Assembly (NCBI RefSeq): GCF_963853765.1
Contig: NC_088853.1
Span: forward strand, 23,498,001 to 23,562,000
Direction of reading: 5' to 3'
DNA: 64,000 nt
Origin: Magallana gigas
Taxonomy: Eukaryota
Of the stretch, positions 16,266-48,476 are shown piece by piece; position 1 is the stretch's first letter, and each line of letters opens with the position of its first letter. The notes beneath the pieces were generated by a model, which ran no database searches, had not been told where the DNA came from, and saw nothing but the letters and a program-made list of their open reading frames with translations. The translations under genes and the position numbers were made by a program.

Positions 16266-16292
16266 AATTTATCGCCATAATTTGTCATTTTT

Positions 16293-16432
16293 TGTCCAAC
16301 GAAAGTAAGCTGCCAAGGGGATATAGTTATTCTCAGACAATCTTCCTCACAATCCAGAATGCTGTAGATGTTAAATTATCATCTTCTTTCCAATTGTTTC
16401 TGTACTATAACACTGAGTAGCCATTCCGAAAG
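16293..16432 (-). pseudogene. Heavily degraded PAN-exon copy
   Basis: tctcagacaatcttcctcacaatccagaatgctgta and gagtagccattccgaa align with the intact exon at 35407-35512. Contains indels and stops. Confidence 0.7.
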
Positions 16433-19329: not shown

Positions 19330-19581
19330 GATACAAAGCCATCCTTTTTTTTAAAGTTGGTCTGACAGAAGTGGGCTCCCAGGTGGTAGTTGACGGACCG
19401 ACATCGTGTTGTTCTCAGACATTCCTCCACACAATCCAGAATACTATATTTATATTCGTCATTTGATCCGTCTGTCCAGTTTGTGTTCGTACAGTAGCAT
19501 CATGTCGAATATCAGCAAAACACCGTTTGATAAGCAAAATGTAAAAAAAAAACATATCTTTAAATTATAAAGAGGATGCAA
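19330..19581 (-). pseudogene. Degraded PAN-exon copy (start ATG changed to TTG, deletions)
   Basis: Reverse strand reads ...TTRCRSVNYHLGAHFCQTNF. Upstream 19590-19860 resembles 35600-35900. Confidence 0.85.
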
Positions 19582-19887
19582 CTTATGTTGAATACTAATT
19601 TGAAATCATCGCGGCATTTATCCAATCTATGTTGCTCTTAATGGCATTTGAAATAGTAAATTATTGCGAAGCTTTAAGGTATAAAAGAATACAATAATTC
19701 ATTGTTTAAATCAAATTATCTTTTTGTCAAAGTTACCATTGTGATATTTGATGTAATTCTTCAAATGGTTTCATAAAATCAATAAATTCAAGTACATTCA
19801 TTTCCTATTTTCAAAATGTTATCAATCCAGAAAGGTCAGCGTTGATGTTTTATCATTGAAATACTTTTGAAACGTAATGTGATGTTA

Positions 19888-19990
19888 CATGCGGGTAGGA
19901 AGTAAGCGATCTTTGCAGAAAAAAATTACATAACCCGCTAATGCAGGTTACGTATTTTTCTGCAATGTCGCCACCTTCATATCCTGCATG
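19888..19990. repeat. ~100-bp foldback mini-element (copy at 39954-40056)
   Basis: Outer inverted repeat catgcgggtaggaag / cttcatatcctgcatg; inner inverted repeat gcagaaaaa..tacataacc / ggttacgta..tttttctgc. Confidence 0.6.
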
Positions 19991-20419
19991 AATCACCAAG
20001 GAAATCATTTTATTTTTTTTTAATATCAATGGCTTGAAAACCTATGGAATATTATTGTTTACATGATGTTTTGATCGATAGGTGTATTTACTTTGAGCTA
20101 ATGGTTTAACTCATCTTAAGCAAATTTGAAAAGCAGTGTTACCATGAAAGTGTTTAGGCCTATATATTCACTATAGTTATTCCTAGAATTGGAACAGCCA
20201 GTCTCGCCGTCACCTTTATATCGATCGTTGATCTAAAGCAGACGAGATCGTGAGAAGACGCTTAATTATATATTTAGTAAATTAAATAATGTGTACTTTC
20301 TGTTAAGTCTAAGCATTTAATTTGGTACATTTATAAAGTAGTATTTCGTTTCCTTACAATTAAACAGACACAGCTTCACATTTTGTAGACAGTGTTTATT
20401 TTGGAAATTCGCCTTCTAT

Positions 20420-21411
20420 ACAATTTGTTAATCGTAAACGTACAAGTACACTGACGATTTTGGACAATCACCTATACGAGCGTTTCACTAAACCTATCGT
20501 AAATGTAGCACTTACGATTTGCGAGTTACGTTCAACTCAGTGGAATTCGTCAAACAACGGAGGTATATTTTAAGCATACGTAAACCTTTTCACTTTTGAC
20601 AGACGACACTGCCAAGATTTTAGCTAAAACATAAGTTATTCATTTCGTATACAAACCTTAGAGATGCGTCTGCAACGACTTGGATATTTATGGGGTGGTA
20701 TCCCCTATGACACACATATTTTGCCTCATTCACCTTGGGTGCAATAATGAGAAGGAGAGTCCTATCAATGGCACCAAGGATATTGGGAAATACTGCTGTT
20801 TGGTACAAATCATGTTTAACATGATTTGCTTCCTCCTCTAGAACGAAAAAAGCAATTACTTATTGATAATTTTTTTGTACTTATCTTTTTTAGTTAGTTA
20901 ATAAATTTATTCATAATTTTTTTTACCGATTAATCGACTAAGCCAACCGAGTAAAATTGATATCCCTACTACAAAGTTATTAAAATGATTTTTGAAAATA
21001 CCTTTTAGGAATTGGATATTGTCAATTCTCTTGACAAATTGACTTTGTGACGGCATCAACCGCTCTGGATACACTGACCCTAGATATGCGGTGTAAATCA
21101 CCACAATCGGAGAAGAATGATGCTTTGGCAAGATACCTCATGGTCACAAGAACCTTTGAACATTTAATAAAATTTCTCATTGCTTTACGTACCTAAATAT
21201 GTATCAATAATGTTCTCTTTCAGAATAAAAAGTAGTGCGGCTAAAAACATGCATGAATGCTTGACTGACATTCAGAAGCCCCATACTCAGTAGATAATCA
21301 GATTGCATTTATGTTGATCAAAAATAATAACAAACATTACATACAAAAAATCACACTGCTACAGTTTGGTAATAATGAGTTGTAAAAGCCATTCCAATTT
21401 GGTAGTGTATT

Positions 21412-21486
<75 letters not shown>

Positions 21487-22030
21487 AAGTTTCGGTGTGT
21501 AATGTCTTTGTATTAAAGCAGTTGACACGAAAACTTTTTTCAGACTGCATGTTGTATTTTCACTTCGTGTTTACATAAACCGTTCATAAAATGAAATATA
21601 TAACGGCAGATAACTCTAAATATACATTGTTTAAATTTATTCACCTGTGGGTGCAATCTGACAGTGCATGGCTCCTGTGGGTGTCTGGCTCAACGTCCTC
21701 TCTGACGAGATCTTTGTGACGAAAAAAAAATTCTCTGGGCAGTCGATAACGCTCTATCACATTGGTGTCGGTCAGAAAGTCTTGGAGGTTAGTCCTGTTT
21801 CTGAAAACTCGTTTTTTTCGTAATTTTCTCTGCATTACGTCGTCTGCTAATATAAACAAGGTTGTCATTTTTATTTGTTTATGTGCACGTAGATCAATTT
21901 AAGAGTGCCCCTGGCTGCTCGTAGACTTAAGCGTAACTTCAATCGTAACTGGCAACTTGCAACTCTTAACTACACGCATTTACGTGCTACGTTTATGATC
22001 TACCTACGGTCTCTTGGTGACAATGGGGCC
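20420..22030 (-). mobile_element. PIF/Harbinger transposon deletion derivative, copy 1
   Basis: Spliced transposase remnant 20657-21868: MTTLF...RYRL; RYLAKASFFSDCGDLHRISRVSVSR; FPNILGAIDRT...YVCHRGYHPINIQVVAD (HARBI1/DDE_Tnp_4-like). GGCCCC terminus at 22025-22030 and subterminal inverted repeats. The left boundary is approximate. Confidence 0.8.
21416..21484. repeat. (CT)n microsatellite in a Harbinger intron
   Basis: Direct run; it produces the spurious poly-RE and poly-SL ORFs. Confidence 0.95.
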
Positions 22031-22821
22031 TGTTTAATATTATATTAATATGTTATTAAAATGATTGTGAAATTTTGAAAGTAAACCTTTCTAGAATGTC
22101 TTAACAATATAATATTTTTAAAAACCAATTTCCTGTTTCAAAATCAGAAAGATGTGACGCGTGCTTGCTTTAAATATCGTTTTAAAAATTTCAATTACAC
22201 AAATATTTATGAGCAATCTCCTCCAGCTAAAGTGTCTCTCATGCAAGACATACAAATACTATCCATACTAAATCTTATCTCAACTATTCATTGAAAGATT
22301 GATAGGTTTGGGAAAAAGAGGTAAGTTTACCATGTTTGAAGGTAATAAATAACTTCCGCTTAATGCATTGTCAGGTTAAAGTAACCGGTTATTATGTACA
22401 AGGATGCATATGGCGTTTACATCAATTTATCACAAATCTATGTACTCGATATTTGGTTTATGTCAGATTTTTTTTTCTCGTACAATTGTCTAAATGTATT
22501 GATGTTGCATCTGTTACAACCCCAAAAGAAAATTATGGGTCTTAGTAAAAAGGTGAACAAGTCTCAAAATGCAGTTGCTTGATTTCTATTGCAATATGCT
22601 GAAATAATGACATCATGAATATCTAACAACAATGTTACGATGTCATTAATACATGTTGTTTACTGTAACAGTTTTATGACGTTTTCATAATGGTTTTAAT
22701 ATTCACAACTTTTTCAAGTTGAAATTTTGTGAAAACCGGTAAATCTGTGACATAACGAGAAAACTTACTCAAAAAGTAAAGTTATATATATTTTTTTATT
22801 ATAGACAAAATTAAATGAAAC

Positions 22822-22953
22822 NNNNNNNNNNNNNNNNNNNNNNNNNNNNNNNNNNNNNNNNNNNNNNNNNNNNNNNNNNNNNNNNNNNNNNNNNNNNNNN
22901 NNNNNNNNNNNNNNNNNNNNNNNNNNNNNNNNNNNNNNNNNNNNNNNNNNNNN
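22822..22953. other. Assembly gap (132 N)
   Basis: N run; homologous to the microsatellite at 62661-62784. Confidence 0.99.
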
Positions 22954-23748
22954 TTTCTTTATTATTAATAAAAAAATAGGAATGACATTATCTACTTTTT
23001 TAATGTTATTCAAAAAATACAATGCTTTCTGTGATGATCAATGAGGTCATAAAATATGTTTCCGACGAAAGTAATGTAACAAATGTCATATCTTTTTTTG
23101 TGAAAAAGAAATTTTGGCGAGATTCCCTGGAGTCTTATTGTCACAAATATTTCTCGACAATAACAGGTTCTTGCCGCGCCAGTTTAAAATACAATATGGG
23201 CGTGGTTAAGGCTTTAAGGCGACAAATAGTCAATGCGAAATATTTCATCTACTGTACCTCGTTAAATAAAGTTTTTGCGAATAAAAGTCGTATTACTGTA
23301 ACCGATAGAAATAAACGTATTTGTTCATTAATTAATGCAAGGTCAATTCAACCGAACTGAAGTCAGTCTCCGCTTCCAAACAGCGATTTTGCGTTTAAAG
23401 GTAGGCTTGATAAGTTCAGGCAATTAGACTTTGATTACTATATCCTGAGGCTGTTTTGTCAGTAGATGTAAACTGAATAGTCTTTTTTCCACAAAGGGAC
23501 TTTAAGGACTTAAAAGAGGTAAGGGTTTATAGTCTTGCTCGAAAAATTAATTGCCTCGCGCGACTTCTACATATAACCCCCTGACAAGACTTGTACAATC
23601 CATAGAATCGTCAACTCTCTGAGGAACATACATGTACAAGCAGAGCTGCAAAATAACGGCGCTAATACTTTTAAATTAACAAGGCCAGTTCATATGTTTT
23701 GGTGTTATGTTTTGGTGACGTTAGGACCAGTAATACATGTAACTAATA

Positions 23749-23986
23749 TACTGTGGAATCATTAAAATTCGTAGGGGCGAATCTTCGTGGATAGCTTGAA
23801 TTATACAAGTTCATGGGGCTGGAATTTCGTGTATTAGTTTATACCTACAAAGAAATTATGACTTTATAACACTTATCTATTAATTCGTAGATGATTCGAT
23901 TTGTGGATGATTTCAAGTTGTGGATGGGAGGTACCCACGAATTCCACGAAAATTGAGTCACAACGAAATAAAATGATTTCAGAGTA
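23749..23986. mobile_element. Tc1/mariner-type MITE (copies at 43576-43813 and 63575-63812)
   Basis: TA-ctgtggaatcatt ... aatgatttcagag-TA. Confidence 0.7.
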
Positions 23987-25144
23987 TATTTTAAGCATTC
24001 TTGTTAATGAGGATCAGGCTATGCATCTAAAGCTACCCCTGCGTTTCATTTATATTATAATAAAAGTAACTACGCAGTTCATCTTATGTTCAAGGTGCCG
24101 ATTTCAACCCCTGGTGGAGAGAGTGCACAATTAGAGTTACGTTATTTGCCAAAGGTTACATTGTTATCATGATATCGATAGACCAGACTCGAACATGTGT
24201 CCAGATCAGTCGATGCTATCAAATGCTCCAACACCTCTACTTAATTCCGCATTGTTGTATTAAACCATAAAAATCGTAAACGCCAAAAAGTTTTTATTAT
24301 TTAATATTTGATTGTTTTAAAGTTTAGGCATGCAGACAATCACTGTTCGATAATACATGTAAATGACACTAGTGGTTTAAAAGATAGAAGGGTCAAGCAA
24401 TATGGTTAGAAATATAGAGAACGCAAGAGAATAGTTACATGGTTATTTCATCATTTTACATGTATCATTTCAATGCGAGATTTTTCAGCACACATTTAAC
24501 TCAAAAGCAACAAACAGCCAATGTAAATATTGGAGCCTTCATGCTGTTTGTTTGCCTATTGCAGTATGGTATGATGTTCCTTACAAACCAATAATTGTCA
24601 AAAGTTATAAACTTTCACCTATTTACACCAGCAGAATCGTTCTCTTTATATTTACAAACATGAATATATTAAAATATTACAGTAAACACATTTATTTGTC
24701 ATTCTTTTTATTGTTTTTGTTTTCGTTACTACTTGAAGAAACGTTTGTTCTATTAATAACCTTTGTGTTTTGTTTTGTTTTATTTTTTTTTAATTAAAAT
24801 CTTCTAAAAGACCGACACAGCTACTGCAATACCTATTATTATACTTATGCTACTTAAGCATTGAATTAATTAATGATTTAATGCTCATTTTTACATTTTT
24901 GGGGGAAATTTTTTTGTCTTGTCTACAAATGTGATCAGTATCTTCGCAGTCCTTTTTTTATCCTTAGGGTAAGTAAATGTATAGGAAGAGCCACTCTAAC
25001 AGCAACAAGCGTGAACTTTGATATCTGCTTGTTACGTTGCATACATGCATTGATATTGGTTTTATCTCCCCAGCTGATTAGCTCTCAGCTCAAAGTCTAT
25101 ATGTTCGTAAGATTTATTTTTATATTTTTCCCCTTTTTTTCAGT

Positions 25145-25595
25145 TAGGTTCATGTATGTAGGGTGTTTCAAGGACAGCTAAGATCGAGTTTTTAAATCAG
25201 AGAAAATGTTTTCTTTTCCTATGGAAGACTTCAATGCTAGAATGTGTGCTCTACACTTGGCAATTTTAAATATTTCGGCATGGAAATGTGTATTTGTATA
25301 CTTTCTTCTTTGTTTTTTATAGGCGAATAAGCAAAACAGTCAAGGAAGCATGAAACCATTAATGCCTCAAAGTTATACACTCGTTTCCTTTTATCATATT
25401 GTCTATAATCCCCCCCCCCCTGTCTCTCTCTTATTAAAAGAATGTATTTTTGTATTTATTTAGTATGGATCTCAATGTTTTTGCGGACATCCTTTTTAAA
25501 AAAAATACTTGATAGCGAGTGTAATGACCCCTGCGATGTAAACATTGAAGACACGTGTGGTGCAGTTTGGGAAATAGATGTATATAATTACCTCT
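25145..25595 (+). pseudogene. WSC-domain pseudogene, unit 1 (convergent with the PAN-WSC gene)
   Basis: First exon YVGCFKDS*DRVF...MCAL/GNFKYFGME; second exon (after AG at ~25463) YGSQCFCG/..DSECNDPCDVNIEDTCGAVWEIDVY. Contains a stop and frameshifts. Confidence 0.75.
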
Positions 25596-26104
25596 AACAA
25601 AACCAATAGTTTTGAAACGAGGATGGAACCTAACAGAACTAAGATGCTGTATCATATGATTTAATATGACGCAAAGTTGAAAATATAATAACTGTATTTA
25701 TAGCAAACATCAGTTGTAGCATTTTCAAATTTGGGACCCTTGGCTCTCCTCTACTTGTTACCTAACATTAGGAGCGATGTAAAACAATTGCAATGGTTAC
25801 ACTATTCTATCTGGTCACTTCCATAACCCGAGGAGTTATACTTGGAAAATAAAATGAATAGTAAACAATATAGTAATGAGGTATAGCATTCAAGCGAAAG
25901 ATTCTTTCAGAAAACATGGGAACATGAAAATACATTTCATTTCCTTCCAATAAAAGCAAAATTGAAATAACAATTTACATCTCAAAGTAGTCATGTACGT
26001 AAGATCAAATTGTATAGCACTGACTGGTACTAATTTACATATTGATTTTAATGACACAATAGTATTCGAATCAAGGTGATGATGTTTTCAGCATATTTAA
26101 TTAT

Positions 26105-26595
26105 ATGGGCATGGTCACGATTTTGGTCAAATTTTATTTTTCTGTTTTATTATCTGCAATGCCTAAATAATGCATTTCTAATGATCATATCAAATTTGGG
26201 TTCCAATCGTTGAGTTTTAAGCAAGATACAGGGCTTACAATTCTTCGTCATGTAAACAAGGCTCGCGCCCTGTTTTTGTTTACATAGGTTCAATATACCA
26301 GTAACAAATCTGTTTAAAGCTGGTTTGAATATCTTATTATTCATTTAAAGCATAAATAAACAGTTCCTAACGATTAACACATTTATTTTAGGTCTAAAAC
26401 TAGAATTTTAACTTCAACATTCGAAATGTAAACAAACCCTTTGTTTACATATCGAAGAATTGTAAGCTTTGTAACTCGCTTATATCTAATCAAATGACAC
26501 TCAAATTTTGGTTGCCTATAACAATGCCTTACTAAAGCATTGTAAACATTAAAATTGAAAAAATAATTTTTGACCAAAATCGTGACCATGCCCTT
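26105..26595. mobile_element. Kolobok-type MITE (copy at ~45917-46408)
   Basis: TIR gggcatggtcacgattttggtcaaa / tttgaccaaaatcgtgaccatgccc; TTAA on the right side. Confidence 0.75.
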
Positions 26596-28639
26596 TTAAA
26601 AAGGTGTTTTAGTGCATCATTTATTTTTTTATTATGAAATGAATATTTTCCTATTCAGATTGCTAATTTATCTAACAAATATCTACAAATAAAACAAACA
26701 CTTCGTGGGTATCAAAATAAAAGTTTTTATTAGGAATAAAATAATTCCAGGTATACAATGAAAACATGACAATAACAAACTAAGAAATCAACAAACCCTA
26801 ATGTCTCAAAGAGGATTTTCACAAAAGTATAAGTATTCATTGATTTTATGTAAAACTAATTTAAAAAGCCGTCAATGATTCACTTCAACACGAGAGATTT
26901 AATAACCATGTCGTATATCACAACCCTATTATAAGGACTTGATAACAATGTCAAAAATACATAAAGTTATGGGCACTTTTTCTTTCAGTACACAATAACT
27001 TAGATAATTTAGATTGTACGTCAATTTACATTCATTTCAACTCTACAAAAACATTCACAGAAACGTGTATAAATAAAACATTGCTGAAACTACAAAAATG
27101 TTATACCTTAAGTTAGGTAATCTTTATTGTATTAAACGTGCAAGAAAAACATTATTTTAACCCAAGGCTTTGATTTACATACAGAAGAATGTTCTAAAGT
27201 CTAAATACTATAAAAAAAAATATTTTAATTTAAAAAGTACAAAAGATGATAAAATACAACATTTCGTTCATAAAGCTTTACGAAATAGATAAGAGATGTG
27301 CATTTTTTTGTACTAAAAATTCGAAACATTACATAAAAAACTAGTTTCTAATACCGTCAACAACGAATAAGTTTGACGTACTTACCCTATCTATGAATAT
27401 ACACTATAAGTTATACATGAATTATATACACTTTGTTTTTTTTAATCTACTGTGTAAAAAAAGTAACATAAACAAAAAATTGAAATGTTGTCAAAAACAT
27501 TCAAACGTAATTTACAAAAAAATGTTTCTTGTACTGAAAAAAAAACAATCTTGATTTGATACAGTGTACCATTGTTACATCAGCAAACCTGCAAGCTATC
27601 TAAGGTTTTTTTTTTGTTTAGTGCGTGTGAATTTAGTAAAGTTACTTATCGTTGCTTGCATGAATTTTTACATATAGCAGCAAACAAATATTGAAGGTGT
27701 TGCAACCTCGCAATTAGTCCTAGCCTAGAAATCATCCCTTCCATTGCCCCATCATCTCCTTTACGGTGATTTTTGAAATGATCAGTCTGAATTATATATG
27801 AGTTTGTCTTTAACAAGAGCTTGAAATCCTGGCGAAGGGTCAGTGAGGACAGCAATTGTGTCAATAGAAAGAGGAGATAAATATACAAAAAATGATGAAA
27901 TTCTTTAAAGTGTTTGCGCCATAATTATTTTTTACGATGAAAAAAATGAGGCCACATTTGCTTAAAACCTTCATGATCTTAATTGTCAGGGTACATTACA
28001 TCAGCTGCAAACAAGACTCCATAGTGACTTAGGGTTTTATATAAGTTTCTTACGCAGCTATGCCACGCATCACCAATTTTCTTTATGTTTTAATTCATAG
28101 ATACACCTGTGTGTAATGAACAAAAAGACACCAACATTAGGCTGCTGGCGAGAACTGTTACCATAGTTACCGATAATAATAACGACAAATTGCAAAATAT
28201 AAATACTTTGAAGACGTATGATATGGTAATGCCCACTTATATAAAGTATGAAAGACCTGAAACAAACTTTTTATAGTGTCAAATTTCATTTTATAGAAGA
28301 AAATTATACGAGCTATTACCTTTTAAATGTTATTTTTGAAACAGCTAGAATCATATAAATGAATATGTAACTATTAAATTTTTACGTCCTTATCGATTTC
28401 AAAGCAATAAACATTTTTAATACGAACATTGAAACCTGTTGCTATGGTAACATTTCTTATAAATAGAAATACATGAAAACACAACTGAACTGTTTTGTAA
28501 CTACTTATTCATATCTGCCTTGGTTCCTTGATATACCTCAATATCTTGTTATGCGACACGGAGGTATCGCCACTCTAAAATTGATGTAGCATTGAAAATC
28601 ATACACCAACATTTCATTCAATGTATGTAAGTAATTTCT

Positions 28640-28783
28640 TTATATATATGTAAAGATGTACAACCTTGATTTACCACCACACAACTCATTACTGTTCCCA
28701 CGACAGGGCGTATTGCAGTCTCCATCCGGCGCAGAAGTAGGTGGATTCAGAATTTCATTTCCGCAAAAGCAAAATTCACCATA
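28640..28783 (-). CDS. Gene 1 exon 5: WSC domain, C-terminal half and stop
   Basis: YGEFCFCGN...DGDCNTPCRGNSNELCGGKSRLYIFTYI*. Confidence 0.85.
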   Translation of the reverse strand, partial: YGEFCFCGNEILNPPTSAPDGDCNTPCRGNSNELCGGKSRLYIFTYI

Positions 28784-31700
28784 CTGAAAAACACATCATC
28801 GTAAACTTGCACTTTTGGATATGAATATATGATGTGTCCAACAAAAACGACCATTTAAAAAAAAAGTTTGTACAGTATTGTTGTAAAACATATTTTTCAT
28901 ATTATTAATATGCATGTATATAAGCAAAGTTCTTTTTTGTATCAAATGACATAACAAATTATGAATGATAATCTTTTCGTTTGTCCACTCTCTAAACTTG
29001 TTATTTTCTACCCAATATTATTTTTCTGAAGAAGTTGTAATATTCATATCAAATATGCAATGTACATACAGAATAATGCTTTAAGTATTTGGACAAAATG
29101 GCGGCTCCTTTACATTTGCGACAGAATAAGGTAAAATTTCTTTCATCCAGTTTTCATATTTAAAATATCTTTAGAACTAAAACTTACTAATTTCTTTGTA
29201 AGATTTATTTAAACAATATTTTATTATGTAAAAAAAATATAACATAATATGATTTGGCAGCAGGCAATCTGCCTATTTGAGCCCTCTCCTTTGTTTGTTT
29301 TCTTTGTAAGATGACTTTTTAGTCAAAAGACATTTTGTAAACGTCGAGAATTTGCCTGTTACAGGCTAAATACATACAATGGTTTAATTTTAGTCCAGAA
29401 GAGCTGGATTTCACAAATATAATCTTCCTTGGTCTCTATTCTACTAGCTCTTCCTTGATGTTTTCTTTTGATTAGAAGCCAAATATTTTCGATGATGCTG
29501 ATGTCAGGGCTCTTTGCCTGCCAGCTCATTCGTCTTAGGTTATTGCTATGTTAGCTTCACACTATTTTTAAACCCTAGGGCAAGGAAAACTACTTCACTA
29601 TAAGCGTCGATTTATTATGAGCGTGTTGGCTATAATCGTGTTTTATACTGTAAATAATCCTGGGTGGAAAGCTCACGACGTACCGGATCATATCGTATTG
29701 AAAAACTTCTATTTTGGAAAATGATTGGCTAAAACAGGGTACAAATTGTCATCTAATATCTTTTGATATTGCAAACATTAATGTTACCGTCAACTCATAT
29801 ATAGGGCCGACACCTTGCCATGTGAGACACCCCCTAGTCATCACTTTGTAACAGGGCTATGCCTTTTGTGCTTCCAACAAATCGGGTCCTTAGCCATTGG
29901 CTCCCGCATGAAAATCCTTTACAGTAAGCCTTTGCTTTTACGGCATCAAGACAAACGTTTTGACTATTACTACTACTACGCTTTTTCAAACTCCCAGCTG
30001 TAGATCTTAGTATATGCAAGGCATTTGACATGGCAATGGTTTTACCCGCCTCCAAAGATTTCTGAGTGATTTCTTTTACCAACTTTTTTACTTCTTTTCC
30101 GCTGCGACAATTTTTTTTACGATGACCGAGGTTTGTTTACAAAAGCAGATGACATTAAAACTCGTGATATTTAAAATGACATTGTTGCAATGTAACACTA
30201 ATAAATGCGTTGTAAACATGCCGCCGTTTCGTCCAAATACTAGTACATATTGCATCAGACTTTATTTCCTAAGACTATACAAACCCGCAGGCCGTAATAT
30301 TTAAAGTTGTTTTGGTGTCGGAGTAAACAATAGTCTTCACATTCATGTTCTCCATTAGGCTTAATACTATATTGTCCAAATTCTAGAACATCCTGATTGT
30401 AATCGTATTTAAAACATCCCAATTTTTCTAAATGGAAAAAAAAAGTTTCAATTGAATCATGTACATGTACTTATACATGTATATTTCTAAATAGTCTTGG
30501 AAAAGAGAATGTTGCTTTTACGATCACATATCTTTGATGAAATAACTCTTCATTATGTGTATGTTTTTTGCATTGTTTTTAAATTGAATTTTTGTTAAGT
30601 TTTTTTTTTTTGGTGGAGTTGGGAGGAAGGGTTAATCAATTAAAAGATTGTTGACTCTTGACCGAAATTTGAATGCTTATAAGTTTCTATTTCTAAAAAA
30701 AATTATATACACACAATTACCTATGATAATATATTTCTTTAATAAATTTTTATTTCCCAGTAAGCTTTCAATATGATTTGGAATTTTTTTTCTACTTAAA
30801 AATTATGTTTCAGAAACTGAAAGAAAGTGAAAGGCATGATTGTAAAAGGTATGCCTTACAACCCTTCGAGAAAAGAAAAGAAGGGATACCGTTAAAACAT
30901 CTGCAATGGAATGGAGGATATTAATATATCCTTTTAGGGAATTTAAAGAATAGTTCCAGAACAATAATCATTTATAAAGCAACTGTTAAACATCGATTTT
31001 TTAACGATACGATTTGATTTTTCCCCCTAAATACAATTTATACTTCTTAGTGTTAGCATAGGTTTAATGTGTTGGAAAGTCAGCTTGTCACGTTATCTTA
31101 CGTTTCATTGTGCACTTCAAATTTGTCTTCCAAGATCCATCAGGGCAACAGACAAAACGCTCAGAACCTTGAGGCTTGTATCCGGCAGAACAGGTAATAT
31201 GAATTCCTCTTTCTAATCCAATGGCATCCCATTCCCTAACCTTTTCCATCGAGAAACGTTCATTTGAAGGTATACCACAATCTGTTAATTAAAAATGAAA
31301 CATCAATTTTCGGTTATTAATATAAGTTCTTTTTTGGATGCGTGAAATAAATGCTATAAAAAGATCTTACCAAATATTGAGGGATGTCTAAAATAGCCGA
31401 CAATTGAGATGTTATCATAATAAAGAGTTTATAGAAATAAAGGTGATGTCCGTTTAGTGCCCTGCACCAAGTTTCTTTTTATACGTACATCTAATAAAAA
31501 GATCCTTATAAGTGTCTATTAATTTATCTACATTATTAAATATTTTGATTGAAAAAAAAAAATGTGAGATTTAACGTGATTGTCTCTTTCACCGTTATTT
31601 GTGACACAAAAAATATATGAAAATGAAGAACCTGAAATGACACAGCTGAACTGTCCAAAAGGTTTTGGAATGCACTTTTCATTCATGGAACAGTTTGACA

Positions 31701-34700
31701 TCGAACATGCTCCTGCAATGGTCTGGAAAAATATAAATGCTACAGTGGTTTTCCCAGTATTCGTAAAACTCTAAGGCTTTTGGATTTAAGTATTGAGTAT
31801 GCCAAAAATTACTATACATTGCTGTGCAATTTCTTGTTAACGAATTTATATTTTAAAGACCAATGGCCAAGAATATGTGTATTTTTTTTTAAATCTTTCT
31901 TTTACACAAAATTTACGAAATTTTGGGCATGATTAAATATGAAATTACAGATTTACTGTAAAAAAAATATAATAATAAGTGATTAAACATTTGAATAATA
32001 ATGCTGCCTTTTTGGTTCTCTCGAACATGAGCATTTGCTTCCTTTTTGTAGCATATACACAATTTAATACAATTTTATTTTCAGAACATTTTATTTAAAA
32101 ATCATACCAAATCAACAGGCGTAATCTATTTAACTCCTAACTGCACAACATAAAACTTTATTTAAGCGTTATAAAAATTAATTTGTTTGCTCTTTTTTTG
32201 TTTGTGCTGGAATACAGTGTATGAGCGGTTTATTCCCACTTATCAAACATTCTGAAATTCTCAATTCCCACTTGACCAACATTTTGATTTTCACACCTTA
32301 GAGATCAGGAGACCACTGTTTTTTGATAATATTCTTTTAAATATACCAACACATTTTTAATAATTCTCAATTATCTCCCTTTGATAAAGGGCGTGACCCT
32401 TCATTTTTAGACGGGGTCACGTGACCCCGTCTTTTAGTTTACTGTCAGCCAAAGTCTAAAACTAGAAGGCACGCGTAGAACACATGAATTGAGTTTACGC
32501 GTAAGAAAATAGTGCAGAAAGTTTTCATGCATATCAGTAAATATATATTATAAAAACATGCATAAATCTTTCAAACGCAATGTACCATTTTTAAAAAGTT
32601 GTGAATTTTATTTTGATAATCTTTCACATGAATACCACCAAGCTTCATGCGCAAACCGAAGTTAAAAATTAGGACGGATTTTACACATATGTCTTACATA
32701 TTAACTAGGCGTTTCATTGGCTTCCAGTCTACCTGCGGTATGACTGCTGTTCGTTTCTAACGGAATCTTGTACATAGAAAATAAAAACAAGTCTGAATTT
32801 GCCTTCTTGTTCATTGGTTCTTTAATCAATTAAACTGAATTAAAATTTTGAACAAGCAAAATCTATATACTGTGGTTTCATCAATATTCGTTGAATACCA
32901 ATTTTCGTGGATTTCGTTATTAAAGGGAATTTGACACGATTTGACTTAAAATTTTCAAATTTTATTTTTCCATTTTCAATGTTTATACTCATAAATATAG
33001 ATGTTTGTAATGCTATGTCAAAATTTGAAACTCAAATATTAAGTTATAAGCAAGATACAGAGTTCATAATTCTTTGTTTTGTAAACAAAGCTCGAGTATT
33101 GTCATTTTTTACATATTCGTTTTATTGGTATCAATTTTAATCAAATGTAACTTTCTTTTGTTGATAATAGTATTTAAAAAGATATTGAATAAACAGGAAA
33201 AGTAATACAGTTCTTTCCAAAATATACCAATACTTCGATTGAAATAAATAAATATCTTCCAAGATCGAATTTTGAAGACAGAAAACAATTTAATTATTGC
33301 GCCAAAATGCACGAACTAATGTGCGGGGTATTTAATCTGAAAAATAATCAGACATATACAAACACTTCTGACACCATTGTTGAGACGGTATATATTTGTC
33401 AATGATACTCACAAATATGAGTTATGAGTTGTTAAAAACCTCTAAAGTCTGACGGATAAAATCTACGTCCAACTCGGGCAAGGTACAGGTAACAACTGAA
33501 CTTTGTTTACAATGGATATATATTTATGTTGTTATTAATGGAATTCCGAACCCGATGGTAATATTCACTACATTAATTCAAATTGTTTTTTACCTGTCAT
33601 TTTTTCTAAGAAATGGTAATTCTCTACATTACATTTTTTGTAAACAACTATAAGACTCGAGCTTTGTTTACATAACTATCAATAATTACCTCTGTATCTC
33701 CCTTGTAACTTGACTTTAACATTTAATATTTTGGTCAATCATTTAAAATGCACCAATAAACCATTTTATACATAAAAAATAAAAATAAAATTGTTGATCT
33801 TAAATCGTGTCCAAGTCCCTTTAAGTTGATCCACGAAATTAAGTGTTAATTGAAGTACAATTTCTATTAACATTTTGTATTGATAGGGTCACTGGCCACG
33901 AATTTTGAAACTGTGATTTTCACTTAATCCACGAAAAATGATACCTCTGATTATTAATGAAACCACAGTAGATTATTCATTTTGGGTGATCAATACATCA
34001 AATAAACCATTACCATTACTTTGTGAAAATGTTGTATATGTTTCATGAATAAAACATGCTTAAACATATTTACAGGTCTGTGTTCTCTATCAGGTTCAAA
34101 TTTAATGGCTTATACAAGATTGCTGTAACAGTTGCATTTGTAGTTCTCAAAGTAAGGTTGATCCCGTAACATTTACACGCTAATGGCGGAGTTGCCAATC
34201 TTTGTTATTTATGTCTCTGAGTATGGTTTTTAATGAACGGAAAGGTTGTGTCGTAATTCGTGTAGGTGATGCACGAGTTTACACCAAAAAGTAGTAAGTG
34301 GCGAACGGATTTATTTTTACCTATTAATTTTGCATGAATCGCTGCAAGAAAATCGTGTCAGATAAGTCGGTCTAAAAAATCAAAATGGCGACCGTGACAA
34401 ACCTTTTTGTTGTTAGAGTACTTGGAATCTTACTGTAAAAAGAAATATTTCTAACGTCAGGTGCCTGTGTTTGTTATCGGTATACAAATATTAACTTTGC
34501 TTATTAATTCAGCAGTTTGAGAGTTTTCGGTGTTTTCATATGCCTTGTATAACGGATACCGTCCGACTTGTGGATTTTCTCTTGGATCACAAAATTGAAT
34601 AAATCTAGTGATTTAAATTATTTCCTTGATATAGTTATTTTGATTTTCCCGGTTTGTAGTAATTTTTTAAATGTTTCCTTTGGGTCTTATTTTACATAAA

Positions 34701-35594
34701 ATACCGTTGTGTCAATTTTCTACAATTATGAAGGCTGGGATATAGTAAAATTTAGACAAAGTATCAGACAACTGCAAAAGCCAATTTAACGTAGATTGAA
34801 ACAACTAATTTGGAAGCTGTTCGAGAAAATCAAGGACAAATACAAATTCAAACTTTCAAGACCCCGTCTTTCAGTACTCTCAGTACTTTGATAACAAACT
34901 TGAATTCCCTTCACCTAAGGATGCTTTGTCAAATATTGGTTGAAATTGGCTAGGTGTTTCTGGAGAAAAAGTCAAAAATGTAAAAAGTTTACAGGACTGA
35001 CAGACAGAGAGACAGACGGACTCTATGCAAAAAGCAATCAAAAAAGCTAGCGTATGGGATAAACTTTAAACGAATCTGTTCTGATATTTTATACAATGAT
35101 ATGAGTTTTCTTTAACTAAGAAAGGTATTATAAAAAATGCTGTTGTAATTTTCGTAGAAGTAACAAGGCGATACAGTATATTAATTTTTATAAAAGAAAC
35201 CTGATGTTATTCATATGTTATATTAATCAATGATATAAATAGACCTGAATCCTTCTATAATACTTACCGTGTCCCAGTCCTCTATATCACTGTAAATCCA
35301 GCCAGACTTTTCTATAAAGAGATCAGGTACAGTTGTCCTGTTTTCAAAGTTGGTCTGACAGAAGTGGGCTCCCTGGCAGTAGTTAATGGATTGACATCGT
35401 GTTGTTCTCAGACAATCCTCCACACAGTCCAGAATACTGTATTTATGATACGACGTTATCATCCTTCTCTCCAGTTTGTGCCCGTACTTTAGCATCGAGT
35501 AGCCATGTCGAAGGTCAGCAAAACAGCGATTAATGAGCAAAAGTGCAAAACAAATCCTTAGACTTAGGCACAGATTATCGTAAAGAGGATGCAT
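28640..35594 (-). CDS. Gene 1: secreted PAN/Apple-EGF-like-Sushi(CCP)-WSC protein, 294 aa, 5 exons
   Basis: Exons 35268-35594, 31632-31722, 31102-31281, 30285-30427, 28640-28783 (327+91+180+143+144=885 nt). All introns are GT-AG with compatible phases 0,1,1,0, and the frame is open to TAA. Predicted signal peptide MHPL...CFA; no transmembrane segment. Confidence 0.85.
29067..30258 (-). mobile_element. Degenerate Tc1 element in intron 4 of gene 1
   Basis: TA-cagaataatgctttaagtatttggacaaaatggcggc pairs with gccgccgtttcgtccaaatact (30220). Minus-strand remnants: GCLTWQGVG..VDGNIN..ILDDNLYPVL and WQAKSPDISIIENIWLLIKRK. Confidence 0.75.
30285..30427 (-). CDS. Gene 1 exon 4: WSC domain, N-terminal half
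   Basis: LGCFKYDYNQDVL...ECEDYCLLRHQNNFKYYGLR; donor GTTTGT. Confidence 0.85.
31102..31281 (-). CDS. Gene 1 exon 3: Sushi/CCP domain
   Basis: DCGIP...ITCSAGYKPQGSERFVCCPDGSWKTNLKC; donor GTAAGA. Confidence 0.85.
31632..31722 (-). CDS. Gene 1 exon 2: four-Cys EGF-like module
   Basis: TIAGACSMSNCSMNEKCIPKPFGQFSCVIS; acceptor ttccAG, donor GTTCTT. Confidence 0.8.
32868..33970. mobile_element. Tc1/mariner-type MITE (host of a Kolobok insertion)
   Basis: TA-ctgtggtttcat ... atgaaaccacag-TA. Confidence 0.75.
32924..33820. mobile_element. Kolobok-type MITE
   Basis: TTAA target duplication (32920-32923 and 33821-33824); TIR agggaatttgacacgattt / aaatcgtgtccaagtccct. Same family as 56495-56994, opposite orientation. 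Confidence 0.8.
35268..35594 (-). CDS. Gene 1 exon 1: signal peptide + PAN/Apple domain
   Basis: SILDCVEDCLRTTRCQSINYCQGAHFCQTN; donor GTAAGT at 35267. Confidence 0.9.
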
Positions 35595-36359
35595 TTTTGA
35601 TAACTTGAAACAACGTATGTTGAATATTTCTTAAAAAGTTGCACCAAACGATAGCCTATAGATAGCATGTAAAACTATCGCCGTGTTTATACAGCATGTC
35701 TGGTGTTTATTGGCATTCGAAATAGCTTATCAAATTTAAGCTATAAAGTATAGAAGAATAAAATATTCATTATCTATATCAAATTGGATATTTGTAATAG
35801 TTACCACTGTGATACTTGATATAAAAATTTCAATAATTTAATAAAATCAATATATTCAAGCACTCTAACGTCATGTTTTAAAAGGTTATCAATCTAGAAA
35901 ACTTCAACGTTAATGCTTTATCGTAAAATTGCTTTTAAATAATAAAAAATGAAATTGAATGCCAATGTTCATAGATCTTGATCAATAGCTTGAAAACCTA
36001 GACAATCTTTTCATGATGTTTTGCTTGATGACTTGGTGTAATCACTTCGAGCGAAAGTGTGCCTTACACATGACGTTAATAAATAAAAAAAAAATAAAAT
36101 GCTACTTAGAACTTAGAAAATTTCTTGATTTGTTTACAGACTTTTCCAGTTTTTTCCCGATTACGACATAGAGAACACGGCGCTTGTGACCGGTCAGCAG
36201 AGTATGCTCACTTCTCCTTAGAACCTGATCCTACCTGTATCTTTTGGAAATCCCTTTTGCTCTGCTTTGAATTTGTATTTTGGATTTTTGAGATGGTTGA
36301 TGGTTTTTTATTGTCATTTTCTCATTTCTGTTTAATTTATTGCCATAATTTGTCATTTT

Positions 36360-36505
36360 TTGTCCGACGAAAGTGGGCTTCCTGAGGGTAGAGTTATCCT
36401 TACACAATCCTCCTCACTATCCAGAATGCTGTAGTTTATAAGTTAAATTATCACCCTTCTGTCCAGTTTGTGTCTGTACTGTAACATTGAGTAGCCATTC
36501 CGAAA
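36360..36505 (-). pseudogene. Heavily degraded PAN-exon copy, unit 2
   Basis: Homologue of 16293-16432. Confidence 0.7.
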
Positions 36506-39402
36506 TTAATTATTAAAATGTTGTTAATGAACAAAAATGCCCAAAGCATCATAAAACAGAATTTCAAATTATCTTTAAGTGGATACAATTTTTTAAAGTC
36601 TTAACATTAAATAATTTAAAAAGTTACTGTGTGTCGTACTTGACAATAATCGATCGATCTAATCGTGGGTGAACGCAGATGGCATTTTGGGAAGTTAATG
36701 GCATGTTGAATAAATTCAGAAAGATGAGCATCAATTTACATCGTAAATTACACGGAAACAACATATCTATTATTTGTATTGAATTGCCCATTTCTGTCAT
36801 AGCTACTGTGTGATATTTTCTAGAATTTACTGGGTGTCGACAAATCTTAAAATCTCAGTACACTAAGTGTTTGTTTTAATTGGCAAAAACTGTAGAGTAT
36901 TCCATTCGGTTCTATAATTTGTTAACTATGAAATGTAAAATCGGTTCATATAAATCTCATATCAATTTAAGGACTGTATCTCTGTTTTGATAATGTAGAT
37001 GATTTTTGATGCTACCACATCGCGCAAATCTGAAGGGTGACTCGTAAAGGAAATACATAATTGATAAGTGAAAATCCACGTTCTGTTCCATTCGTCGAAA
37101 ATTTTTTAGCATTTTATAAACCACCTTACTTGAAATTCTGTGAGAATGAGGTACTTTTTTCTTAAATGACCGTAAGACTTCAGGATAGAATTTTTGTTTG
37201 CTGTATTAAAAGTAATTCAACGTATTTAAAAAATCGGATTATCATTTATTTTATATAAGCTTTGCAAATTGAAAGTTTTTGATACAAATCCAAAGGAAAA
37301 AATACATAACAGGAACAGAGGAAACAAGGACCTCAACAAAGGGAAAAGTAGGGTCATGTGCCACTGAGGAGTGAGCATTCTCTGTTGACCGGTCACACCC
37401 GCCGTGCTCTTTGTCGTAATTGGGAAAACGAAACCGGAAAATCCTTAGACAATTTGGAGATTAATTATGGTCTTACAATAAGTACACGTATAAAAATTGT
37501 CAGTCAGCATGCGATCCATTGGAAGATTGTATTTGCTGCATCGACTATAGACCTTACGAAGATGCCTTCTTTCGAGACTGATGCATTGTAAAATTGAATG
37601 TTGCAACCACTTAAAAATTTTATACCCTAAATAGACTACCAACATAATTCTATTAGTAGGTAAAAACAAGTCCACGTACGGGCCCTGGTAAAAGGTGAAC
37701 AAAATGAAGATTCAAACTAAGCATAATTTTTTATCCCACATCATCTGTTGATATTTTAACCTTAAGAATCAACAAGTTTTAGCGCTAAAAAAGTGTACAT
37801 AAATAGCACAAAGCTTTACAACATAGTAGGAGTGAGCCGACATTTATGATTCTATATAGTAAATGAAGGACGGGCATTCATTTCAAAGCCTTTGTTTACT
37901 GTCAGCCTAACCAAGTACAAACATGCAGAAAAGATATAAGACGCATTATATATTTAGAAATCTTCTGTTAAAATAAAATGTTTGTAAAACATTAGGCTGG
38001 TACCTAAAATCAAATAACGTATGGAAATTTGGAGGATTTTCCTATAGTAAGTGGCAGCTGTTACCTGCATGACCCATGTTTGAACGTACATATGAAATAA
38101 ATGATTCCAAACAGTTACGTGGGTTATTTCCAGGTAGTCTTGTCAAATGTGATCACTGCTGAACACTGGTACGTTTTAAATCGATTTCCATCAATTTTGT
38201 ATATTCAGGAATGTTTGTTTCATCCCTATGGTCATATGCAATTTCAAAACTTTATTATTTTTTTTTCAGACGTAAAATAATCCATAAAAAAATATTCAAA
38301 AAACGCACCGATCGATCCACCAACAGAAAAATGCTGATTAAAATGCCTCCTCCCTCTGAGTTAAATAGACACAATTCAAGTAGCTTCCGGATTTAGATTA
38401 TCTATAGGCATTAAAAAATCCTCAATTGTTTAAAACAATATGAGCTGCAATTTCCATGTTTGAATTGTTTTTACAATAATGCTATTTTATACTAATATGA
38501 AAACAAATATCATGGTTATAAAATTTCTGTGACCGGTATTGCTGTAGGAATAGCCGTAAATAATTTTTTATTTGAGCAAAATTGAAATATTATGGTCCGG
38601 TACAAAACTTGATCTGCTATCATATTCCTTAGTAGAGAAATCTTTCTCCTGACAAAAATTGATGATTTTTTCATATCTTATTTATCATAAAAGTTTAAGT
38701 CACATGCAGATTTATCATACTAACAGGTTTTTGCGGCAATATTAAAATGCTTTAAACTGTATTCTCATTTTAGTAAATTATAGCGTGCTTATAAATCAGG
38801 AGTTTCTATCAGTGCTGAAATATTACGGGAAGAAGCAATTGTTACATATTTTCTACATAAAAACGGCACTAAAACGGGCTTATTTTCAATAGCTTAAATG
38901 CACTTGTACTTTGCGTTTTTTAATTATTGTTCAACCTATTTTACGATAAAATACATAGTTTTTGTTCAATGAAATTAAACGAAAAAGGGATATTCATTCA
39001 CTTTTTGAATTCTTATAAAGAGGATTTTTGAGACTGTGCAAATGCAAATAACGTAAATTATCACTCTTAAAACAGAATTTTGTCTAGGCGTATTCAAAAC
39101 TGGGAAAAACTTTTTTAAGTGTAGAGGGGTTAAAAACGAATGGAATATAAATCTTATACATTACCGATATTTTTTATGTCAACATCGAACATGCATATCT
39201 GAAACTAATTGTGTTTATTATCCACATGGTAGTTTTCTGGTTCAGTTCACCCGATCAGATAAAATTTATGACACCCACTGCCTTCTAGATTTCGCTCTCT
39301 CCATCTGACACACGATGAGATATTGAATTTTTAATTTATTGTCGAGAAAGCAAAATTTACATACTTAAAAAAAACCAAAAAAACATTGTAAAGTGCACCT
39401 AA

Positions 39403-39646
39403 TGATACAAAGCCATCCTTTTTTTAAAAGTTGGTCTGACAGAAGTGGGCTCCCAGGTGGTAGTTGACGGACCGACATCGTGTTGATCTCAGACATTCCT
39501 CCACACAATCCAGAATACTATATTTATATTCGTCATTTGATCCGTCTGTCCAGTTTGTGTTCGTACAGTAGCATCATGTCGAAACACCGTTAAATAAGCA
39601 AAATGTAAAAAAAAAAACATATCCTTAAATTATAAAGAGGATGCAA
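39403..39646 (-). pseudogene. Degraded PAN-exon copy, unit 2
   Basis: Near-identical to 19330-19581. Confidence 0.85.
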
Positions 39647-40479
39647 CTTATGTTGAATACTAATTTGAAATCATCGCGGCATTTATCCAATCTATGTTGC
39701 TCTTAATGGCATTTGAAATAGTAAATATATTGCGAAGCTTTAAGGTATAAAAGAATACAATAATTCATTGTTTAAATCAAATTATCTTTTTGTCAAAGTT
39801 ACCATTGTGATATTTGATGTAATTCTTCAAATGGTTTCATAAAATCAATAAATTCAAGTACATTCATTTCCTATTTTCAAAATGTTATCAATCCAGAAAG
39901 GTCAGCGTTGATGTTTTATCATTGAAATACTTTTGAAACGTAATGTGATGTTACATGCGGGTAGGAAGTAAGCGATCTTTGCAGAAAAAAATTACATAAC
40001 CCGCTAATGCAGGTTACGTATTTTTCTGCAATGTCGCCACCTTCATATCCTGCATGAATCACCAAGGAAATCATTTTATTTTTTTTTAATATCAATGGCT
40101 TGAAAACCTATGGAATATTATTGTTTACATGATGTTTTGATCGATAGGTGTATTTACTTTGAGCTAATGGTTTAACTCATCTTAAGCAAATTTGAAAAGC
40201 AGTGTTACCATGAAAGTGTTTAGGCCTATATATTCACTATAGTTATTCCTAGAATTGGAACAGCCAGTCTCGCCGTCACCTTTATATCGATCGTTGATCT
40301 AAAGCAGACGAGATCGTGAGAAGACGCTTAATTATATATTTAGTAAATTAAATAATGTGTACTTTCTGTTAAGTCTAAGCTTTTAATTTGGTACATTTAT
40401 AAAGTAGTATTTCGTTTCCTTACAATTAAACAGACACAGCTTCACATTTTGTAGACAGTGTTTATTTTGGAAATTCGCC

Positions 40480-42133
40480 TTCTATACAATTTGTTTATCG
40501 TAAACGTACAAGTACACTGACGATTTCGGACAATCACCTATACGAGCGTTTCACTAAACCTATCGTAAATGTAGCACTTACGATTTGCGAGTTACGTTCA
40601 ACTCAGTGGAATTCGTCAAACAACGGAGGTATATTTTAAGCATACGTAAACCTTTTCACTTTTGACAGACGACACTGCCAAGCTTTTAGCTAAAACATAA
40701 GTTATTCATTTCGTATACAAACCTTACAGATGCGTCTGCAACGACTTGGATATTTATGGGGTGGTATCCCCTATGACACACATATTTTGCCTCATTCACC
40801 TTGGGTGCAATAATGAGAAGGAGAGTCCTATCAATGGCACCAAGGATATTGGGAAATCCTGCTGTTTGGTACAAATCATGTTTAACATGATTTGCTTCCT
40901 CCTCTGGAACGAAAAAAGCAATTACTTATTGATAATTTTTTTGTACTTATCTTTTTTTAGTTAGTTAATAAATTTATTCATAATTTTTTTTTACCGATTA
41001 ATCGACTAAGCCAACCGAGTAAAATTGATATCCCTACTACAAAGTAATTAAAATGATTTTTGAAAATACCTTTTAGGAATTGGATATTGTCAATTCTCTT
41101 GACAAATTGACTTTGTGACGGCATCAACCGCTCTGGATACACTGACACTAGATATGCGGTGTAAATCACCACAATCGGAGAAGAATGATGCTTTGGCAAG
41201 ATACCTCATGGTCACAAGAACCTTTGAACATTTAATAAAATTTCTCATTGCTTTACGTACCTAAATATGTATCAATAATGTTCTCTTTCAGAATTAAAAG
41301 TAGTGCAGCTAAAAACATGCATGAATGCTTGACTGACATTCAGAAGGCCCATACTCAGTAGATAATCAAATTGCATTTATGTTGATCAAAAATAATAACA
41401 AATATTACATACAAAAAATCACACTGCTGCAGTTTGGTAATAATGAGTTGTAAAAGCCATTCCAATNNNNNNNNNNNNNNNNNNNNNNNNNNNNNNNNNN
41501 NNNNNNNNNNNNNNNNNNNNNNNNNNNNNNNNNNNNNNNNNNNNNNNNNNNNNNNNNNNNNNNNNNNNNNNNNNNNNNNNNNNNNNNNNNNNNNNNNNNN
41601 NNNNNNAGTCTTTGTATTAAAGCAGTTGACACGAAATATTTTTCAGACTGCATGCTGTATTTTTACTTCGTGTTTACATAAACCGTTCATAAAATGTAAT
41701 ATATAACGGCAGATAACTCTAAATATACATTGTTTAAATTTATTCACCTGTGGGTGCAATCTGACAGTGCATGGCTCCTGTGGGTGTCTGGCTCAACGTC
41801 CTCTCTGACGAGATCTTTGTGACGAAAACAAAATTCTCTGGGCAGTCGATAACGCTCTATCACATTGGTGTCGGTCAGAAAGTCTTGGAGGTTAGTCCTG
41901 TTTCTGAAAACTCGTTTTCTTCGTAATTTTCTCTGCATTACGTCGTCTGCTAATATAAACAAGGTTGTCATTTGTATTTGTTTATGTGCACGTAGATCAA
42001 TTTAAGAGTGCCCCTGGCTGCTCGTAGACTTAAGAGTAACTTCAATCGTATCTGGCAACTTGCAACTCTTAGCTACACGCATTTACGTGCTACGTTTATG
42101 ATCTACCAACGGTCTCTTGGTGACGATGGGGCC
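40480..42133 (-). mobile_element. PIF/Harbinger deletion derivative, copy 2
   Basis: Transposase remnant 40723-41971; GGGGCC terminus at 42128-42133. Confidence 0.8.
41467..41606. other. Assembly gap (140 N)
   Basis: N run at the position of the 21391-21507 (CT)n region. Confidence 0.99.
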
Positions 42134-42921
42134 TGTTTAATATTATATTAATATGTTATTAAAATGATTGTGAAATTTTGAAAGTAAACCTTTCTAGAAT
42201 GTCTTAACAATATAATAATTTTAAAAACCAATTTCGTTTCAAAATCAGAAAGATGTGACGCGTGCTTGCTTAAAATATCGTTTTAAAAATTTCAATTACA
42301 CAAATATTTATGAGCAATCTCCTCCAGCTAAAGTGTCTCTCATGCAAGACATACAAATACTATCCATACTAAATCTTATCTCAACTATTCATTGAAAGAT
42401 TGATAGGTTTGGGAAAAAGAGGTAAGTTTACCATGTTTGAAGGTAATAAATAACTTCCGCTTAATGCATTGTCAGGTTAAAGTAACCGGTTATAATGTAC
42501 AAGGATGCATATGGCGTTTACATCAATTTATCACAAATCTATGTACTCGATATTTGGTTTATGTCAGATTTTTTTCTCGTACAAATGTCTAAATGTATTG
42601 ATGTTGCATCTGTTACAACCGCAAAAGAAAATTATGGGTCTTAGTAAAAAGGTGAACAAGTCTCAAAATGCAGTTGCTTGATTTCTATTGCAATATGCTG
42701 AAATAATGACATCATGAATATCTAACAACAATGTTACGATGTCATTAATACATGTTGTTTACTGTAACAGTTTTATGAAGTTTTCATAATGGTTTTAATA
42801 TTCACAACTTTTTCATATTGAAATTTTGTGAAAACCGGTAAAACTGTGACATAACGAGAAAACTTACTCAAAAAGTAAAGTTATATATATTTTTTTTATT
42901 ATAGACCAAATTAAATGAAAC

Positions 42922-43093
42922 NNNNNNNNNNNNNNNNNNNNNNNNNNNNNNNNNNNNNNNNNNNNNNNNNNNNNNNNNNNNNNNNNNNNNNNNNNNNNNN
43001 NNNNNNNNNNNNNNNNNNNNNNNNNNNNNNNNNNNNNNNNNNNNNNNNNNNNNNNNNNNNNNNNNNNNNNNNNNNNNNNNNNNNNNNNNNNNN
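42922..43093. other. Assembly gap (172 N)
   Basis: N run homologous to the 22822-22953 gap and to 62661-62784. Confidence 0.99.
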
Positions 43094-48400: not shown

Positions 48401-48476
48401 TATCGCCGCTATAACATTTGATGTGGCATTGAAAATCATACACCAACATTTCATTCAATCTATGTAAGTAATTTCT

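Follow-up and report, generated by a model that had tools for sequence, protein, structure and literature searches.

The oyster Magallana gigas carries a tandem array of five-exon genes, each encoding a small protein with a PAN-EGF-Sushi stalk and a terminal WSC domain, and within this array the WSC head changes its amino acids faster than the stalk: its ratio of nonsynonymous to synonymous change (omega) is about 2.4 times that of the stalk. The array lies in a stretch of 64,000 nucleotides (RefSeq assembly GCF_963853765.1, contig NC_088853.1, positions 23,498,001 to 23,562,000), referred to below as the window. The best single reading, with roughly an even chance of being right (about 0.5), is that the head has been diversified between copies by positive selection at a subset of its sites. 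The interval of interest, 28640-30427, is bounded by the exon 5 stop codon and the first base of exon 4 of a minus-strand copy, gene 1; its tandem paralogue about 20 kb away is gene 2.

Divergence of the WSC head between array copies

Gene 1 comprises five exons (885 nucleotides, 294 residues) for a leader followed by PAN, EGF-like, Sushi and WSC domains, and gene 2, at 48477-55216, has the same layout and length. The gene 1 model is identical to the database protein XP_065934122.1 (P0128, "uncharacterized protein [Magallana gigas]", on OY970745.1). RNA contigs from two studies (X16 and X18) contain the joints 28783>30285, 30427>31102 and 31281>31632 exactly at the modelled junctions, reading CT..AC on the plus strand, and a loose end at 31723 runs into the 3' end of exon 1. 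Because these contigs splice exons 5-4-3-2 as modelled, the transcript of gene 1 includes both WSC exons. Full-length searches and folding for gene 1 used P0128, and gene 2 was searched by single exons; the searched collection holds no full-length protein for the M. gigas gene 2.

Codons that differ between the two genes, given as replacement/synonymous-only, number 18/17 of 109 in the PAN exon, 0/2 of 30 in the EGF exon, 5/5 of 60 in the Sushi exon, 14/7 of 48 in WSC exon 4 and 9/1 of 48 in WSC exon 5. A sequence-only reading of this DNA had counted these differences by hand; its counts are reproduced exactly, with totals off by one through the assignment of split codons. Nei-Gojobori omega is 0.20 in exon 1 (PAN), 0 in exon 2 (EGF-like) and 0.29 in exon 3 (Sushi), 0.45 in exon 4, the N-terminal half of the WSC domain (nonsynonymous rate dN 0.173, synonymous rate dS 0.384), and 2.8 in exon 5, its C-terminal half (dN 0.096, dS 0.034). 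Pooled by domain, omega is 0.77 for WSC and 0.21 for the rest (Fisher test on nonsynonymous and synonymous differences, p=0.0099), and dN alone is 0.135 against 0.057 (p=0.002). These counts and ratios bear out the earlier claim that amino-acid divergence between the paralogues is concentrated in the WSC domain. The WSC omega of this pair is indistinguishable from 1 (p=0.5).

Non-coding divergence between the repeat units that hold the two genes varies along the gene (in 200-nucleotide windows, 10-12.5% near exon 1, 4-10% near exons 2-3, 15-19% near exon 4 and 6-8.5% near exon 5). The proportion of changed replacement sites (pN) was therefore set relative to the divergence of 400-nucleotide flanks on either side of each exon (p_flank). 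The ratio is 0.99 in exon 4 and 0.89 in exon 5, where flank divergence is about 15.5% and 10%, against 0.57, 0 and 0.36 in exons 1, 2 and 3. Since pN matches flank divergence in exons 4-5, the WSC domain evolves, on average, as fast as neutral sequence. In exon 5 the synonymous rate (pS) is indistinguishable from flank divergence (p=0.35).

Six copies were then compared: genes 1 and 2 of M. gigas (gene 2 being labelled Cg2), three copies from the same gene cluster in C. angulata (including Ca116, a near-twin of Cg2, and Ca118) and a sixth on a publicly available genomic contig (L004). The RefSeq proteins of the C. angulata genes LOC128174116, LOC128174118 and LOC128174119 end by read-through past the Sushi exon, and downstream of all three truncated models lie intact WSC exons 4 and 5 with AG/GT (L001 13947-15923, L003 16877-19596 and L002 12201-14089). 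Because these models stop short of the WSC exons and gene 2 has no full-length protein, family surveys undercount such genes. The L004 copy has a two-codon deletion in exon 4. The eight WSC cysteines, which the sequence-only reading had described as retained, are present in both M. gigas genes and in all six copies, as are the CGG motif and long identical blocks. A first family alignment (A1), in which short WSC exon fragments were placed onto the PAN domain, was discarded, and a WSC-only alignment (A2) was used for folding.

Pairwise omega among the six copies ranges over 0.33-0.80 for WSC and 0.10-0.37 for the stalk, and exon 5 gives 0.39-0.65 in all pairs without Cg2 or Ca116. Codon models of the Goldman-Yang F3x4 type, in code written for this analysis and run on IQ-TREE trees, estimate a single-ratio (M0) omega of 0.58 for WSC, 0.245 for EGF plus Sushi and 0.286 for PAN. 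The stalk is under purifying selection, as the sequence-only reading had suggested for the spacer, with omega at 0.25-0.29 (p<1e-5 against 1). Separate rates for WSC (0.6) and stalk (0.25) on exon-specific trees fit better than a single rate (twice the log-likelihood difference, 2dlnL, 8.0; p=0.0047), and the WSC excess thus holds with the further copies included. The earlier proposal that the WSC domain changes at a neutral or faster rate is upheld in its first half by the flank comparison; its second half fails for the domain as a whole, where the six-copy omega of 0.58 lies below 1.

Site models of the WSC domain contain a class of 17-22% of sites at omega of about 2.6. On one tree, M8 improves on M7 with 2dlnL=6.82 (p=0.033) and on M8a with 2dlnL=6.33 (p=0.006), and the latter comparison gives 2dlnL=4.63 (p=0.016) on exon-specific trees. 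Site models of the stalk return no class with omega >1 (2dlnL=0). The sites with posterior >0.8 are 206, 210, 220, 222, 231, 236, 264, 272, 275, 278 and 285, with 261 at 0.80; five different residues occur at site 278 across the six copies, and two more database variants add further residues at 206, 210, 232, 235 and 236. Variable sites make up 42 of 94 WSC positions and 48 of 174 stalk positions (p=0.0065), and sites with at least three residues 12 of 94 and 9 of 174 (p=0.033). By predicted secondary structure the candidate sites map to the L1, L2 and L5 loops, to the helix and to the ends of strands, with none in the central strands b3 and b4. In yeast Wsc1, loop L5 together with L1, L2 and L4 caps one end of the fold (PMC9024836), and it is therefore possible, by analogy, that the oyster candidate sites form a one-sided patch.

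A neighbouring paralogue provides a comparison from outside the array. XP_034322005.2 of M. gigas (LOC128171663 in C. angulata), about 11-14 kb before the window start and on the opposite strand, has the same five-exon PAN-EGF-Sushi-WSC organization, but its WSC domain is only about 40% identical to that of gene 1 and the rate excess is absent: between the M. gigas protein and its C. angulata counterpart, omega is 0.30 for WSC and 0.28 for the stalk. The excess therefore belongs to the array and not to WSC domains generally.

Possible selection or relaxed constraint, and mosaic ancestry

The array combines a PAN-EGF-Sushi stalk under purifying selection (omega of about 0.25) with a head whose scaffold of eight cysteines, CGG motif and central strands is frozen. 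About one-fifth of WSC positions, in L1, L2, L5 and the helix, are replaced repeatedly, as many as five residues occurring at one position across the six copies. On the reading of positive selection, the head would act as the ligand-recognition end, probably binding glycans, new variants being favoured at a subset of exposed positions over a broadly tolerant surface, and recombination within the array would reshuffle heads and stalks. The gene 1 protein opens with a hydrophobic leader, and seven residues follow its last cysteine-rich block, features that point to a secreted protein with no membrane anchor.

Several results weigh against positive selection. The exon 5 omega of 2.8 reflects one synonymous change in a young tract and provides no evidence for omega >1, and the mean WSC omega over six copies is significantly below 1 (p=0.02). 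The M1a/M2a comparison on one tree, with 22% of sites at omega 2.5, reaches only 2dlnL=5.96 (p=0.051), and on exon-specific trees 4.27 (p=0.12). In simulations under M1a, in which exons evolved on their own trees and a single tree served for the analysis, 5.96 was equalled or exceeded in one of 26 replicates (p of about 0.07). The sample is six sequences, several of them mosaic, and recombination inflates site tests. In addition, several older gene models terminate after the Sushi exon, so some transcripts may lack the WSC head. The site-model signal is suggestive and borderline, with p from 0.006 to 0.12 depending on the test. The diversifying selection on a ligand-binding surface that the sequence-only reading had proposed is plausible and partly supported: the contrast between head and stalk and the site class near omega 2.6 argue for it, and the domain-wide omega and the M1a/M2a results qualify it.

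Much of this would also be expected if constraint on the head were simply relaxed. A WSC domain that became dispensable or very tolerant after duplication could drift at the neutral rate, its disulfide scaffold kept for folding. The match of WSC pN to flank divergence, a mean WSC omega of 0.58-0.8 that is never significantly above 1, the 47-55% of WSC sites already placed in the neutral class by M1a, the borderline tests and the annotated models that stop at the Sushi exon all fit such drift. It accounts less readily for six heads that are all intact with conserved blocks, for a gene 1 mRNA that carries both WSC exons, for a handful of sites that are replaced again in different copies, one with as many as five residues, for the better fit of M8 over M8a on both sets of trees, and for a neighbouring WSC paralogue as constrained as its own stalk. 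Relaxed constraint alone is a serious contender that falls somewhat short of even odds.

The array is also a mosaic. Trees of individual exons conflict, the PAN exon pairing Cg2 with Ca118 and the WSC exons pairing Cg2 with Ca116 and Ca118 with L004. Database variant P0113 joins a gene-1-like PAN to a gene-2-like WSC domain; in database variant XP_034322415.1 a gene-1-like PAN accompanies a gene-2-like exon 4. These conflicts and this mixing indicate exon exchange among array members. In the exon 5 tree the changes fall on the Cg2/Ca116 and Ca118/L004 branches; a recent conversion of gene 1 exon 5 from gene 2 was considered and is unneeded, as gene 1 sits on a zero-length branch. Conversion and recombination could give exons different ages, and with small numbers the uneven divergence might then be a record of age alone. 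The range of non-coding divergence between units, from 4% to 19% along the gene, the conflicting trees, the low exon 5 dS of a young tract and the mixed ancestry of P0113 are in keeping with such an artefact. Yet the contrast survives local normalization, both as omega (0.6 against 0.25) and as pN/p_flank (0.9-1.0 against 0-0.57), and it repeats in most pairs of the five closer copies, which makes an artefact of age an unlikely explanation for it.

Two further observations concern variation over gene 1. An X18 contig (record 7; 28708-28782) has exons 2-4 of gene 1 free of differences joined to an exon 5 with changes at 5 of 75 letters, and its loose end matches the exon 5 variant of L004; the contig may represent an allele, a recombinant or a chimera of the assembly. 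Over gene 1, one DNA run and one RNA run show five differences in the WSC exons (four replacement, one silent) and four in the Sushi exon (two and two), most of them in the gene 2 state. These may be alleles, conversion or cross-mapped paralogues, and were kept out of any McDonald-Kreitman comparison.

Organization of the array

The window is AT-rich, eukaryotic DNA, and self-BLAST shows a tandem repeat of about 20 kb (Table 1). Each full unit has one five-exon minus-strand gene, gene 1 in unit A and gene 2 in unit B, with AG/GT at all junctions, and a third unit starts near 55950 and continues past the window end.

Table 1. Exons of the two array genes, repeat units and runs of N, in window positions
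Feature	Position	Strand	Basis
Gene 1 exon 1: start codon, hydrophobic leader, PAN/Apple	35268..35594	-	ATG at 35594, GT donor; Pfam PAN_1 23.5 bits
Gene 1 exon 2: short EGF-like module, four cysteines	31632..31722	-	Pfam EGF 19.6 bits (cut-off 21.5); RNA joint 31281>31632
Gene 1 exon 3: Sushi/CCP	31102..31281	-	Pfam Sushi 23.7 bits (cut-off 20.7); spliced in RNA contigs
Gene 1 exon 4: N-terminal WSC half	30285..30427	-	AG/GT; no Pfam match alone, part of full WSC match 202-284 of P0128; RNA joints both sides
Gene 1 exon 5: C-terminal WSC half and stop	28640..28783	-	AG acceptor, in-frame stop; Pfam WSC 5e-9, profile 46-82; RNA joint to exon 4
Gene 2 exon 1: leader and PAN	54890..55216	-	Pfam PAN_1 30.7 bits
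Gene 2 exon 2: EGF-like	52345..52435	-	AG/GT
Gene 2 exon 3: Sushi	51804..51983	-	Pfam Sushi 26.0 bits
Gene 2 exon 4: N-terminal WSC half	50311..50453	-	AG/GT
Gene 2 exon 5: C-terminal WSC half	48477..48620	-	Pfam WSC 4.9e-9
Tandem repeat unit A, about 20 kb, with gene 1	15749..35831	.	Self-BLAST
Tandem repeat unit B, with gene 2	35832..55950	.	Self-BLAST
Runs of N	22822-22953, 41467-41606, 42922-43093		

Units A and B are 93-98% identical in the gene-free part (15749-27400) and 80-87% across the gene body (27400-32226), and the central part of intron 1 does not align between them (32.2-34.9 kb and 52.9-54.5 kb). Either uneven conversion or differing ages may have produced this pattern. Both units also carry decayed minus-strand PAN exon copies, interrupted by frameshifts and stops (19348-19550, 39422-39646, 16325-16433 and 36392-36504), which are remnants of earlier duplications within the unit. 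A WSC-like pseudogene on the plus strand, at about 25150-25600 and 44950-45400, retains the motifs GCFKD... and ...C.DPC......CG. Its in-frame stop and frameshift are common to both units, so it was disabled prior to the unit duplication.

Mobile elements are present as well. A long terminal repeat (LTR) retrotransposon occupies 7479-15747, with gag-pol-type open frames on the plus strand at 8915-14090 and LTRs at 7479-8099 and 15114-15747 that are 93% identical to each other. It adjoins the left edge of unit A, where the PAN exon of another array gene would be expected. In intron 4 of gene 1, the segment 29204-29292 is a high-copy repeat: its word depth reaches thousands in one DNA run, it also occurs in RNA runs, and its flanks differ widely. 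Transposase-like open frames lie beside it at 29362-29550 and 29837-30136, and one more is at 57789-58536.

Domain identity and comparison with known systems

In a full-length scan of P0128, WSC (PF01822) scores 56.5 bits against a cut-off of 27.8 and covers profile positions 2-82 of 82; exon 5 alone scores 36.6 bits in genes 1 and 2 alike. PAN_1 (PF00024, cut-off 21.4) and Sushi (PF00084, cut-off 20.7) pass their cut-offs in both genes when single exons are scanned (Table 1), and in the full-length gene 1 protein they score 17.7 bits, under the cut-off, and 20.3 bits, slightly under it. EGF (PF00008) remains below its cut-off in exon 2. The best match of P0128 among sequences of solved structure is the WSC domain of Kremen1 (E=1.3e-5, residues 195-292). 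An AlphaFold2 model of residues 196-294 has a mean confidence (predicted local distance difference test, pLDDT) of 85.7, and Foldseek aligns it to Kremen1 with E=1.4e-6 and a template modelling (TM) score of 0.77. The modelled domain has a PAN/Apple-like fold with a long L5 loop, as in solved WSC structures.

A HMMER search with the PAN exon retrieved 107 proteins. Close relatives from M. gigas, C. angulata and Saccostrea share this stalk, which is up to 88% identical among them, and end in WSC, Lectin_C, SUEL lectin, fibrinogen C or F5/8 type C domains. Sister genes thus have recognized carbohydrate-recognition heads in the WSC position, an analogy that supports WSC as the binding end of the protein. 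In P0005 and P0109, with stalks about 75% identical to that of gene 1 and 88% identical to each other, a Pfam-silent C-terminal domain replaces WSC, which suggests a fairly recent head swap within the family. When the WSC portion of P0128 was used in a word search, which covered relatives of 162-514 residues, it returned its own cluster only, and a degenerate pattern built on the end of exon 4 had no match in a metagenome scan.

Bivalves are without adaptive immunity and are known for lectin-type gene families that are large and change quickly. If the WSC head is indeed under positive selection, WSC would be an additional head type in such families. A broader proposal, tentative and on balance doubtful, is that PAN-EGF-Sushi forms a chassis with interchangeable heads (WSC, C-type lectin, SUEL, fibrinogen-related and F5/8-C), and that in the WSC array exon recombination and selection at about 15-20 loop positions build a germline-encoded binding repertoire. 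Such a chassis would amount to a modular soluble recognition-receptor system, hitherto undescribed; a literature search found no paper describing the PAN-EGF-Sushi-WSC architecture. If the selection reading holds, the WSC heads would also offer a compact test case for WSC ligand choice, with 95 residues, about 15 variable positions and natural variants in hand. To our knowledge, no ligand is known for any animal WSC domain except that of Kremen.

Known WSC domains resemble the oyster head in fold and differ in context. Human Kremen1 (PDB 5FWS/5FWW) is the best fold match, with 33% identity and the eight cysteines and CGG shared, but it is a kringle-WSC-CUB membrane receptor, whereas in the oyster the WSC domain comes last in a small, apparently unanchored protein encoded in a tandem array. 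The known partners of Kremen1 are the proteins Dickkopf and LRP6 (PMC9024836). Fungal WSC domains, represented by the cysteine-rich domain of yeast Wsc1 (PDB 7PZ2), share the fold with a TM score of 0.70, and in this fold a long L5 loop held by two extra disulfides surrounds the PAN/Apple-like core (PMC9024836). That article cites SiWSC3, a lectin that binds beta-glucan, as an example of a carbohydrate-binding WSC domain. The fungal domains are only 21-22% identical to the oyster domain and belong to cell-wall sensors or effectors. A parallel in organization is with tandem lectin-type families of bivalves, such as the C-type lectins (PMC10140915), which show the same lineage-specific expansion and combine a secreted stalk with a fast-changing, recognition-type head; in the oyster array, however, that head is of the WSC type, on a PAN-EGF-Sushi stalk.

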